Positions 7,231 through 10,800 of a stretch of 64,000 nucleotides of DNA are shown in pieces. The stretch comes from Adineta vaga (lineage: Eukaryota; Animalia; Rotifera). The stretch is taken from assembly GCA_021613535.1 (NCBI GenBank), contig CP075497.1, positions 11,408,001 through 11,472,000 on the forward strand, read 5' to 3'. Within the stretch, counting starts at the first letter, position 1. Each line of letters begins with the position of its first letter. The notes under the pieces were generated by a model that saw nothing but the letters and a program-made list of their open reading frames with translations, was not told the DNA's origin and did no database searches. Both the position numbers and the translations under genes were made by a program.

Positions 7231-7554
7231 ATGTTTATTACTATCAGACTAATATTCACTCTATTTTGGATGTATGCTTGTATATTTCATGTGTTCAGTA
7301 TGAATGAACATCGTTATCTTCACAAAGGACCGGATTACAATGCTAAATTGAACAAATTTTCTCAGGCAAAATTTACCTCTGATCAATATCGAGATTACAA
7401 AAGAAATCCGTGCATTCAAAAAACGTGTTCAATATTAAACAAATCTAATCGAATTAAGAATCCTGATGATAATATTAAATTGAAACAACGTTGTCACCGT
7501 AAAAAACAAGTATGTCAATGGAAAAATAAATATCGTAAAAAAAAGATTACATGA
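7231..7554 (+). CDS. Putative small secreted cationic protein (107 aa, 4 Cys in the mature part)
   Basis: Intronless ORF with a signal-peptide-like N-terminus and Lys/Arg-rich remainder; no recognised homology. Confidence 0.45.
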   Translation: MFITIRLIFTLFWMYACIFHVFSMNEHRYLHKGPDYNAKLNKFSQAKFTSDQYRDYKRNPCIQKTCSILNKSNRIKNPDDNIKLKQRCHRKKQVCQWKNKYRKKKIT

Positions 7555-7700
7555 GATTACATTCGTGATGTTTCGTAACGTCATTGATGAAAAACTTCTA
7601 TTTTGCATCTTTCAAAGCAGAAATAAAATGAATTAGCTAATTCAACTTTAACCTGATGTTTTTATTTTTTCTTTCTAGAAATCTTAAATAAATTTAAGAT

Positions 7701-10345
7701 TTAACCAAAAATGGTAGAAAAGACTGATTGACTGAGAGTTGGTAAAAGGGTGTTTAAATGATTGAGTACAGTTGAGGCAAGATCATCGAAGTTAATACGA
7801 CCTTGGTAAGCAGGAAAAAATTTTTGGAGAAGTTTACGAAGACTACCCAAAACTTTGCTCTTGTCAGTATTTTTGATAAGTTCCACGATTTGAGCGAGTT
7901 TGTCAACTGGTAATTGAGCTAATAATTGTTGATAATTAACATTAAGATCACGTTTACCAAATATGCTGAGAGCACCAATGAGAATGCCTGGAAGAGCATT
8001 AACGACACCATTGAGAGCTTGTTGACCGACTTGTTCCCAACTACAAAGAAAATGAGCTATTAAAAATGTTATAATTTCATTCTTGCACATACTCGATACG
8101 CATAAGACCGAGTTGTGGAACGAATTGAGTAACGAGTTGTTGAATGGTTTGAGCAATAGTGGACAAGTCCCAGTTGTTACCTGCAGCAGCAATAATTGTA
8201 GCGAAGAATTGGTTTTGTAATTGTTGTAATTTATCACCATTTAAAAATTGTGTGATTTGTGGGATAAATTGTTGAATTTGGAGTTTATTGGCCAAAGCAA
8301 CGATGTCATTGAGGTTGACACGAGCATCAACAGCTTCACGTTTACCAAATATGCTGAGAGCACCAATGAGAATGCCTGGAAGAGCATTAACGACACCATT
8401 GAGAGCTTGTTGACCGACTTGTTCCCAACTACAAAGAAAATGAGCTATAAAATATGCAATGATTCTCAAAACATACTCGATACGCATAAGACCGAGTTGT
8501 GGAGCGAATTGAATAACGAGTTGTTGAATGGTTTGTGCAATAGTAGACAAGTCCCAGTTGTTACCTGCAGCAGCAACAATTGTAGAGAAGAATTGGTTTT
8601 GTAATTGTTGTAATTTGTCACCACTCAAGAATTGTGTGATTTGTGGAATGAATTGTTGAATTTGGAATTTGTTGGCCAAAGCAATGATGTCATTGAGGTT
8701 GACACGAGCATCAACAGCTTCGCGTTTACCAAATATGCTGATAGCACCAATGAGAATGCCTGGAAGAGCACCAGCAATACCATTGAGAGCTTGTTGACCG
8801 ATTTGTTCCCAACTACAAAGAAAATGAGCTATTAAACATGCAAGGATTCTCTTACAAAACATACTCGATACGCATAAGACCGAGTTGTGGAACGAATTGA
8901 GTAACGAGTTGTTGAATGGTTTGAGCAACAGTGGCTAAATTCCAGTTGTTACCGGCAGCAGCAACAATTGTAGCGAAGAATTGGCTTTGTAATTGTTGTA
9001 ATTTGTCACCACTCAAGAATTGTGTGATTTGTGGGATGAATTGTTGAATTTGGAATTTGTTGGCCAAAGCAACGATGTCATTGAGGTTGACACGAGCATC
9101 AACAGCTTCACGTTTACCAAATATGCTGAGAGCACCAATGAGAATGCCTGGAAGAGCATTAACGACACCATTGAGAGCTTGTTGACCGACTTGTTCCCAA
9201 CTACAAAGAAAATGAGCTATAAAATATGCAATGATTCTCTTACAAAGCATACTCGATACGCATAAGACCGAGTTGTGGAACGAATTGAGTAACGAGTTGT
9301 TGAATGGTTTGAGCAATAGTGGACAAGTCCCAGTTGTTACCTGCAGCAGCAATAATTGTAGCGAAGAATTGGTTTTGTAATTGTTGTAATTTATCACCAT
9401 TTAAAAATTGTGTGATTTGTGGGATGAATTGTTGAATTTGGAATTTGTTGGCCAAAGCAATGATGTCATTGAGGTTGACACGAGCATCAACAGCTTCACG
9501 TTTACCAAATATGCTGAGAGCACCAATGAGAATGCCTGGAAGAGCACCAACGACACCATTGAGAGCTTGTTGACCGACTTGTTCCCAACTACAAAGAAAA
9601 TGAGCTATAAAATATGCAATGATTCTCTTACAAAGCATACTCGATACGCATAAGACCGAGTTGTGGAACGAATTGAGTAACGAGTTGTTGAATGGTTTGG
9701 GCAACTGTGGCTAAATTCCAGTTGTTACCTGCAGCAGCAACAATTGTAGCGAAGAATTGGCTTTGTAATTGTTGTAATTTGTCACCACTCAAGAATTGTG
9801 TGATTTGTGGGATAAATTGTTGAATTTGGAGTTTATTGGCCAAAGCAATGATGTCATTGAGGTTGACACGAGCATCAACAGCTTCACGTTTACCGACAAG
9901 ACCAAGAACAATACCAGGGAGAGCAGATGTTGCAGCACCGACAATTTGTTGAAGAATTGTATCAAAATCAAGACGACTTTGTGGTTTTGATCCAAGAAAA
10001 TGTTGAAGAATTGGTCGAAGTTTATCTTTGATTGAGTTAATATCAAGACTACCTCCAAGTTGACTTGTGATAACTTGAGTAATTTTATCCTTAAGAGCGA
10101 GTAATTCAGATGATGAGAGAATACCAGAAAGTTGTGGAAGAATTTGGTCAAGTTGACCGAGGAAACCCTAAAAGTTAAAAAAAAGTTGTGATTTATGTAT
10201 GAATTTCTGGATGTAATAATTATACTTGGAATTGAGGCAATAAAGAGATTAATGCATTCAAGTTGTTGACTTGTGGAATTACAAGTTGACCTTGTATGAA
10301 AGCAATACTGACAAAAATGAGAGCAAATCCGGCCAAGAAACGCAT
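7701..10345 (-). CDS. Secreted repetitive prepro-peptide polyprotein (776 aa); exons 10345-10226, 10167-9641, 9588-9253, 9200-8865, 8812-8477, 8428-8093, 8040-7701
   Basis: Signal peptide MRFLAGFALIFVSIAFIQG. GT-AG introns give one continuous 2331-nt frame with six G-K-R sites and a terminal FG-stop. TATA upstream. Confidence 0.85.
7950..9894. repeat. Tandem repeat, about 5 copies of a 384-388 bp unit (336-bp exon + 48-52 bp intron)
   Basis: Anchor ctacaaagaaaatgagctat occurs at 8041, 8429, 8813, 9201 and 9589. Confidence 0.95.
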
Positions 10346-10404
10346 TTTCGGAGGTGCCAAAAATATCAACTGGATATAAATTGATATGCGTAGATTTTTT
10401 TGTT

Positions 10405-10412
10405 CTTATATA
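10405..10412 (-). promoter_or_regulatory. TATA box of the polyprotein gene
   Basis: TATATAAG on the minus strand about 60 nt upstream of ATG 10345. Confidence 0.5.
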
Positions 10413-10542
10413 CGTCTTTTTTATCTAGCTTAATTTTACTTTCATAAATTAACATCAGGTTAGTTTCTCACACCTTCATGTGATGGTTTTTATTATTTGT
10501 TTCTCATGCTTCAGATTAAAAAAGATTACACGAAAATATAAT

Positions 10543-10800
10543 TTAGTGAGGTAAAAAATAGTTCCAATCGAGCCAACGTAGGCGAAGAGCCAATTCAGAA
10601 TGTGACCATTTGGGAGAATGCGTGATGTATTCATGCGCCATCAAATTTGTATGTGCCAGACCATCAAGAAATTCGATGTAAGCAAGAGCTAATCGAAGTG
10701 TATCGATTTTTGATAGACGTTTTTCATATGGAAATCGTGGTATATGTGAGCGAAGTTCAGCAAATGCTGCATTCAGATGTGATAATCGACGGTCGGTCAT
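10543..10800 (-). CDS. HLH protein of the PTF1/Fer (Fer2/HLH-13-like) family, apparently lacking the basic region
   Basis: [34 protein letters not shown] plus a C-terminal W..SEL..RL.W.W motif. Confidence 0.8.

Follow-up and report, generated by a model that had tools for sequence, protein, structure and literature searches.

A transcribed polyprotein gene of the bdelloid rotifer Adineta vaga that may yield amidated helical units with hydrophobic tails

The stretch of Adineta vaga DNA analyzed here (the window; 64,000 nucleotides (nt) of contig CP075497.1 in assembly GCA_021613535.1, positions 11,408,001 to 11,472,000) carries on its minus strand a gene for a repetitive polyprotein with a predicted signal peptide and regularly spaced Gly-Lys-Arg sites. 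Unless another contig is named, positions below are those of the window. The transcribed gene extends from a start codon at 10345 to a poly(A) site at 7641, and its coding sequence consists of seven exons (10345-10226, 10167-9641, 9588-9253, 9200-8865, 8812-8477, 8428-8093, and 8040-7701). The six GT..AG introns are 58, 52, 52, 52, 48, and 52 nt long. The 58-nt intron follows exon 1, and the five near-identical introns of 48-52 nt lie within the repeats, which Tandem Repeats Finder (TRF) recorded as 5.0 copies of a 388-nt period at 7948-9894 of the minus strand, with 93% matches. Joined, the exons form a 2331-nt frame with a single stop that encodes 776 amino acids (aa), 13.7% of them Gln, 13.8% Leu, and none Cys. 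The model is identical at all residues to P0055 ("hypothetical protein I4U23_030842 [Adineta vaga]," 776 aa). With the frame and splice check, this identity and the top N-terminal hydrophobicity window confirm the 776-aa, Cys-free precursor with a signal peptide that the original prediction had proposed from the sequence of this stretch. Further minus-strand features are a TATATAA box at 10406-10412, about 60 nt upstream of the ATG, which may act as core promoter, and an AATAAA polyadenylation signal at 7661-7666, 20 nt ahead of the poly(A) site. The fourth repeat intron (8429-8476) is 48 nt long, a multiple of three, and free of stops; a mechanical open reading frame (ORF; 8077-8928) reads through it, which could mislead annotation based on ORFs.

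The gene is spliced, polyadenylated, and transcribed, as seen in contigs from four public runs placed on 7501-10500. The splice joint of intron 1 (10166/10225) is present in contigs of runs X1 and X9, the latter recorded as RNA, and that of the last intron (8040/8093) in contigs of three runs; no transcript contig covers an intron. The internal exon-exon joints appear in repeat-collapsed form (8812/9641 and 9588/8865), and contig loose ends of 10 letters run across 9253 and 8093 into the following exon. Among the six junctions required by the predicted splicing, the first and last were thereby recovered directly, and internal joints in collapsed form. A loose end of 23 T at 7641 in a contig of run X7 marks the poly(A) site. 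The relative P0056, an intron-free environmental mRNA of 1756 nt, reads R-I-D-W-E across the equivalent junction. Because full-length mRNAs of relatives turn up repeatedly in environmental metatranscriptomes, abundant transcripts are suggested, and the polyprotein gene is apparently very highly transcribed. It should be noted that in the X1 contig the start codon (window position 10341) is replaced by 21 letters that match exactly C2:2916312-2916332, a piece from the 3' end of an L19e-like ribosomal protein gene located on a different chromosome. A spliced leader was considered for this odd 5' end and rejected in favor of a chimera of two abundant transcripts, given the exact 21-mer.

The precursor begins with a predicted signal peptide of 19 residues (10289-10345), which consists of MR, a hydrophobic core of 14 residues, and IQG|Q, so that the mature chain would start with Gln. 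It holds the top hydrophobicity window (Kyte-Doolittle value over 19 residues, KD19, of 2.06), and the N-terminal pattern M-R-hydrophobic...Q-x|QLV(V/I)PQ is kept in homologues. Seven units follow, each made up of a helical domain, an Arg, a segment of 26-30 aa (module a), and a Gly; after this Gly come Lys-Arg in six units and the stop codon in the last. Module a begins with [ILFV]-[DN]-[WF], has a Pro in its center, and ends in an uncharged hydrophobic stretch. Unit 1 (residues 20-132; 9892-10288) contains an N-terminal helical domain, Arg105, module a1 (residues 106-131), and Gly132, and it spans intron 1 (10225-10168). In units 2-6, the preceding Lys-Arg is followed by the linker EAVDAR, a Gln-rich module b of 73 aa, Arg, module a, and Gly. 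Unit 2, with b1 and a2, comprises residues 135-244 (9504-9885; Lys-Arg at 9886-9891; intron 9640-9589), and unit 3, with b2 and a3, residues 247-356 (9116-9497; Lys-Arg at 9498-9503; intron 9252-9201). Units 4, 5, and 6 comprise residues 359-468 (8728-9109; Lys-Arg at 9110-9115; intron 8864-8813), residues 471-580 (8344-8721; Lys-Arg at 8722-8727; intron 8476-8429), and residues 583-692 (7956-8337; Lys-Arg at 8338-8343; intron 8092-8041). Unit 7 (residues 695-776; 7704-7949; Lys-Arg at 7950-7955) has a short C-terminal helical domain, Arg745, module a7, and the terminal Gly776, ahead of the stop at 7701-7703. All seven units lie on the minus strand, and a phase-2 intron is positioned exactly at R-I|D-W, the start of module a.

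The a-modules comprise one of the LDFD..GLV type, five of the IDWEQ..SIF type, and one of the INFDD..TIF type, each with an Arg ahead of it and G-K-R or G-stop behind it, and the five copies of module b after KR-EAVDAR are likewise as the original prediction had described them. It had also called the peptides anionic or neutral; the net charge is -2 for all seven. Their grand average of hydropathy (GRAVY) ranges from 0.6 to 1.3. The units are slightly acidic (pI ~4.3-4.5), and the Gln-rich helices are uncharged. Among the five repeats of the gene, differences were too few for synonymous and non-synonymous counts to be informative.

With exon 2 as query, 51 proteins were found in a complete scan of 1.84 billion representatives, and a word-indexed search with P0003 returned 36. 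The named relatives are all from bdelloids (A. vaga, A. steineri, A. ricciae, Rotaria magnacalcarata, R. sordida, and the Rotaria species Silwood1 and Silwood2), and the remaining ones are JGI and Logan contigs of 0.9-2 kb, i.e., metatranscriptome mRNAs. On the sequences recovered, the family is restricted to bdelloid rotifers, plus metatranscriptome mRNAs without a taxon. Its members contain one to five repeats and are annotated as "unnamed" or "hypothetical" throughout. An exon-by-exon search of the A. vaga genome (100.8 Mb, six contigs) found no second copy of the repeat. The sole paralogous locus in this search is distant: at C2:533580-534626 (minus strand), at least three tandem units match the N-terminal domain at 29-34% identity. 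This locus is probably I4U23_005810 (P0014, 588 aa), which has five units and zero Gly-Lys-Arg sites. In P0038 (I4U23_004801), a second distant A. vaga paralogue, the sites read G-R-R-A-R. Pfam gave no match at the cut-off with single exons, and a sequence profile search of the PDB gave no match below E 0.2. The BTB, DUF6942, and FCD matches obtained with the whole protein were rejected, as they are sums of partial matches of 28-40 residues repeated five times and not domains. Neither Pfam nor the sequence searches revealed similarity to known neuropeptide families, and searches of the literature for amidated peptides of rotifers, antimicrobial peptides of bdelloids, Adineta proteomics, and the locus tag turned up no mention of this gene. 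With relatives that are uncharacterized and no informative fold match (see below), the family, which the original prediction did not recognize, is undescribed and lineage-restricted, and puts an established processing mechanism to unusual use.

The sites between the units are strictly conserved. In 29 aligned a-to-b units drawn from at least seven bdelloid species and environmental mRNAs, the G, K, and R are invariant (29/29) at a mean column identity of 68%; conservation of these sites in orthologs, by which the original prediction was to be judged, therefore held. The 41 family proteins contain 95 distinct a-modules, of which 89 fit the rule, with G-K-R behind 67 and G-stop behind 22. Of the six that do not, two are false hits of the pattern and four come from truncated or mispredicted models; in two of these four the Gly is kept. 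Where a module of the IDW type comes last (P0007, P0015, P0072, P0075, and P0077), the stop follows directly after the Gly, at the position where internal copies have G-K-R, and a terminal Gly is kept at 27 of 29 family C-termini. Retention of the Gly where Lys-Arg is dispensable fits amidation and would not be predicted from a purely structural motif. By this pattern, the G-K-R and terminal Gly sites are conserved convertase and C-terminal amidation signals, as had been proposed, and the precursor is very probably cut into amidated pieces.

Candidate enzymes are present in the genome. One ORF at C6:4738391-4739242 (minus strand), on the same chromosome as the polyprotein gene, matches PF01082 and PF03712 (Cu2_monooxygen) with 187 and 110 bits and is a PHM-type candidate; DOMON is absent from this ORF and from the adjacent one. 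PF01082 has 23 matches genome-wide, which suggests an expanded copper monooxygenase family, and there are eleven matches for convertases with a P domain (P_proprotein). The linker R-EAVDA-R is likely trimmed off, because homologues either have EAVDAR as a whole block or lack it altogether. Further analyses revealed a second A. vaga polyprotein ORF, at C6:8025712-8026536 (plus strand), ~3.38 Mb before the window, with repeats of ~50 aa ("...PLNL-G-K-R-EVEGDLAAR-ISALSF..."). It has the same grammar of Gly-Lys-Arg, acidic linker, and Arg, here between peptides of ~41 aa and without the helical b domain, which suggests that bdelloids apply one processing code to a wider set of amidated secreted products.

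The original prediction had modules a and b released separately as a two-component system, and this part was not borne out. Mean column identity is 0.65 for module b and 0.66-0.69 for the halves of module a, i.e., the peptide is not more conserved than the region ahead of it; with conservation equal to that of module a, module b does not look like a spacer. AlphaFold models linker-b-R-a (unit 3; 47-row alignment) as one helical bundle with a mean pLDDT of 81.4 and a pTM of 0.74 (blocks 71-90 at 88-92). The helix formed by the first half of module a (83-97) falls in blocks of 92 and 79, and just the last seven residues are uncertain. For the permuted order a-GKR-linker-b (29-row alignment), pLDDT was 51.4 and pTM 0.34, and module b dropped to 45-67. 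Given that b-then-a folds and a-then-b does not, module b would need the a-helix downstream of it. Comparison of the N-terminal unit (N-domain plus a1) with the b+a profile by hhalign gave a probability of 99.1 and an E of 6e-19 over 100 columns; this homology implies that all units are copies of one ancestral "domain + Arg + a + Gly." At the single Arg ahead of module a, no basic residue is found at P4, P6, or P8, and P1' is Ile, Leu, or Phe. Vertebrate and other known convertases disfavor sites that lack an upstream basic residue and have an aliphatic P1'. Thus, the conservation of module b, the joint fold, the homology of the units, and the disfavored single-Arg site make the unit from one Lys-Arg to the next the most economical choice of released product. 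Overall, the earlier interpretation is partly supported: a secreted precursor with conserved processing and amidation sites stands, and two-component release as stated does not.

The hydrophobic tails of the a-modules reach Kyte-Doolittle values of 1.7-1.9 in 19-residue windows, over the usual threshold of 1.6. A rough sum of Hessa insertion energies for the tails is +3.4 to +4.7 kcal/mol, because of which they are unlikely to integrate as spans at the translocon. Reading them as glycosylphosphatidylinositol (GPI) signals was rejected on topology and composition. When four copies of the unit were predicted as a complex, ipSAE was 0.51, versus 0.01 for the best of three controls, with a predicted interface formed by residues 6-55 and the tail at 98-106 (agreement between runs of at least 86% of contacts, pLDDT at least 74). 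In a calibration on two copies and microbial proteins, 21 of 30 proteins solved as one-chain pairs attained this ipSAE mark, compared with 0 of 23 solved as single chains. The prediction supports the view that the units may self-associate with their tails buried between them.

Taken together, these results make it probable, by a modest measure, that the gene encodes a secreted polyprotein that gives rise to seven amidated helical units of ~9-12 kDa with hydrophobic tails. After removal of the signal peptide, a protease of the furin/prohormone-convertase type would cleave behind each Gly-Lys-Arg, a carboxypeptidase would trim the Lys-Arg, and peptidylglycine alpha-amidating monooxygenase (PAM) would turn the exposed Gly residues and the genome-encoded terminal Gly into C-terminal amides; the short acidic linker R-EAVDA-R may also come off. 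The products would be seven homologous units, six of ~12 kDa (~110 aa) and one of ~9 kDa. Each would be a Gln-rich helix bundle closed by the first helix of module a (WEQVGQQALNGVV) and would end in an uncharged hydrophobic tail that is kinked by Pro and amidated (ALPGILIGALSIF-NH2). Such an anatomy suggests an abundant secreted amphiphile in which amidation makes the hydrophobic segment neutral at its end. The most direct inference from it is that the tails, which lie in the predicted self-association interface, allow the units to bind to membranes, to lipids, or to hydrophobic surfaces in the extracellular space. The units may coat a surface or a lumen, carry lipids, or perturb membranes, and a part in defense or desiccation is also conceivable.

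Several points weigh against amidated units of this size. Cleavage and amidation are deduced from sequence grammar alone, and literature searches found no peptidomic or proteomic data on bdelloids. The two AlphaFold alignments differ in depth (47 versus 29 rows), and what the complex prediction provides is a score from a model rather than a measured value. A basic residue stands within two positions of every a-module start and is conserved, with 89% Arg at the aligned column; together with the exon boundary exactly at that start, it fits an extra cut that would release the a-peptides. Known amidated polypeptides are mostly shorter than 75 residues, so that units of ~110 aa would be unusually large. 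The function also lacks a structural anchor, because the fold has no informative relative: with the unit model, Foldseek found nothing in the PDB at E <=0.001 (the weak rows include spidroin domains at E ~2), the wide VIA-align search gave a best Z of 7.1, within the noise of helical bundles, and the search of the ESM Atlas by shape returned generic helical matches only.

Among known systems, the precursor resembles amidated peptide precursors from the regulated secretory pathway, which are processed by prohormone convertase, carboxypeptidase, and PAM, in its signal peptide, its tandem copies that each carry Gly-Lys-Arg, its terminal Gly, the acidic stretch after the dibasic site, and the presence of the enzymes in the genome. 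It differs from them in that a conserved, folded helical domain of ~110 aa, rather than a short peptide and a disposable spacer, lies between the dibasic sites, in that its C-terminal part is a hydrophobic anionic tail, and in showing no sequence relation to known peptide families. The nematode polyprotein allergens (ABA-1) are made as one chain of tandem helix-rich units, which cleavage at regularly spaced basic sites turns into numerous small, near-identical proteins that bind lipids (PMC3079579). In mechanism, the A. vaga precursor would join the dibasic-plus-Gly grammar of prohormones to the logic of these allergens. The likeness to ABA-1, a secreted polyprotein with tandem helix-rich units, here seven homologous ones with regularly spaced Lys-Arg between them, is one of mechanism only. 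The site is Gly-Lys-Arg, which implies amidation, whereas that of ABA-1 is a tetrabasic furin site; the lineages differ, and no Pfam, PDB-sequence, or fold match that would point to homology was found for the units.

If additional cuts were made after the single Arg and the linker Arg, seven free anionic amidated peptides of 26-30 aa and five b modules of 73 aa would result, module b serving first as an intramolecular solubilizer and then as partner in a membrane-active two-component system. We regard this as possible yet rather doubtful, and less supported than amidated units of ~110 aa. The basic residue near the [ILFV]-[DN]-[WF] start is common to the three unit types and to every homologue, the Arg before module a lies in a four-residue interhelix loop of the AlphaFold model, and the phase-2 intron falls exactly at R-I|D-W. 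The a-peptides also recall kinked helices of the melittin or alamethicin type. The polyprotein ORF at C6:8025712-8026536, whose ~41-aa peptides are separated by the same GKR, acidic-linker, and AR grammar without module b, and the block-wise presence or absence of the Arg-to-Arg acidic linker point the same way. Such linkers are known from spider linear-peptide complex precursors, in which many often-amidated peptides are separated by short anionic linkers from Arg to Arg (PMC8290080). There, an inverted processing quadruplet motif (iPQM) starts the linker with Arg and a Glu within the next 3 residues, and a processing quadruplet motif (PQM) ends it with Arg and a Glu at -2 to -4 (PMC8290080). 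The linker R-E-A-V-D-A-R fits the iPQM side, and at the PQM side it has Asp at -3 and not Glu. The R|I sites lack an acidic residue at P2-P4 and hence are not PQM-like, and the missing basic residues at P4, P6, and P8 and the aliphatic P1' speak against known convertases. The spider peptides are cationic amphipathic helices of ~10-35 aa, a character that the a-modules with their net charge of -2 do not share, whereas the modules here are anionic, joined to a conserved 73-aa domain, and without sequence relation to them; this charge is also unlike that of characterized animal host-defense peptides. Release of free peptides would further have to be reconciled with a module b that is conserved as much as module a, forms one domain with the first a helix, and is not confidently folded without the a-module downstream.

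It is improbable that the whole chain of ~80 kDa is functional unprocessed, as a secreted structural or surface repeat protein in which GKR is structural. The model for it would be the MMR proteins of Brachionus, which have a signal peptide and head-to-tail helical, hydrophobic, acidic repeats of 87-92 aa without introns or linkers; they act intact at the body surface, and so does the 29 kDa MRP act intact (PMC2746195). Like them, the A. vaga protein is rotifer-specific, consists of near-identical helical repeats of ~90 aa that are hydrophobic and acidic and vary in number, and has no database relatives. MMR-B is the nearest ESM Atlas cluster by features for one unit; however, the score (0.77) is weak, too low to count as evidence, and no Atlas match was obtained with the whole protein. 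The paralogue P0014, which carries the same units with zero GKR, also agrees with an unprocessed chain. Unlike in MMR, for which no dibasic or Gly sites are described, every repeat here contains a Lys-Arg site, a linker of six residues, and an intron. A link to Brachionus MMR, a comparison suggested in the original prediction, was not confirmed, the profile search returning bdelloid proteins only and no MMR protein. An unprocessed chain would leave without account the terminal copies that stop at Gly and the invariance of Gly-Lys-Arg amid varying neighbors. Still less likely is a role as precursor of a neuropeptide or hormone, with repeated amidated peptides that act on receptors. A signal peptide, repeats between basic sites, and Gly-Lys-Arg would suit it, and amidated neuropeptides are known from rotifers. 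Against this stand the length of the peptides (26-30 residues), their strong hydrophobicity, their variability in length (25-32 aa) and sequence between species, the conservation of the intervening module b, the repeated appearance of the transcripts in environmental metatranscriptomes, and the lack of a match to any known neuropeptide family. We give next to no credence to the idea that the protein crosses the membrane several times, with the a-modules as transmembrane helices and the KR residues as their positive-inside flanks. The 19-residue windows above 1.6 would allow it, but KR is always C-terminal to the hydrophobic segment, so that alternating topology is impossible; the insertion energy is unfavorable, Pro-Gly occurs inside the segments, the protein ends with a hydrophobic segment plus Gly, and AlphaFold packs half of each a-module into a soluble bundle.

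An exon for a basic helix-loop-helix (bHLH) domain (10543-10800) lies immediately upstream of the polyprotein gene and, like it, on the minus strand. In P0073 and P0076, gene models of Rotaria sp. Silwood2, the N-terminus of the upstream bHLH gene is fused to the orthologous polyprotein. Because two Rotaria models contain this fusion, the neighborhood of the bHLH and polyprotein genes is conserved between Adineta and Rotaria.

Amidation is usually a mark of short signaling peptides. Here, its signal is strictly conserved behind hydrophobic tails on a conserved helical domain of ~80 aa. We tentatively suggest that an abundant bdelloid transcript gives rise to a new class of extracellular amphiphile, either free anionic, amidated, Pro-kinked peptides of 26-30 aa with a helical carrier or proteins of ~12 kDa anchored by an amidated tail, which would coat or perturb membranes. 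If so, targets could include the membranes of prey or pathogens or, as the animal dries, the naked apical plasma membrane of its syncytial integument, and the recurrence of the GKR, acidic-linker, and Arg grammar in other A. vaga polyproteins would indicate a lineage-wide, undescribed arsenal of amidated secreted products. The predicted masses of the products make the question testable by mass spectrometry, and the shared processing grammar provides a handle for other members of the repertoire. Confirmation of the products would establish the largest known class of amidated polypeptides, or else an anionic membrane-active peptide of a new kind that brings its own carrier; either outcome would mean that bdelloids, which are noted for tolerating desiccation and for their unusual defense against pathogens, possess a lineage-specific secreted system.

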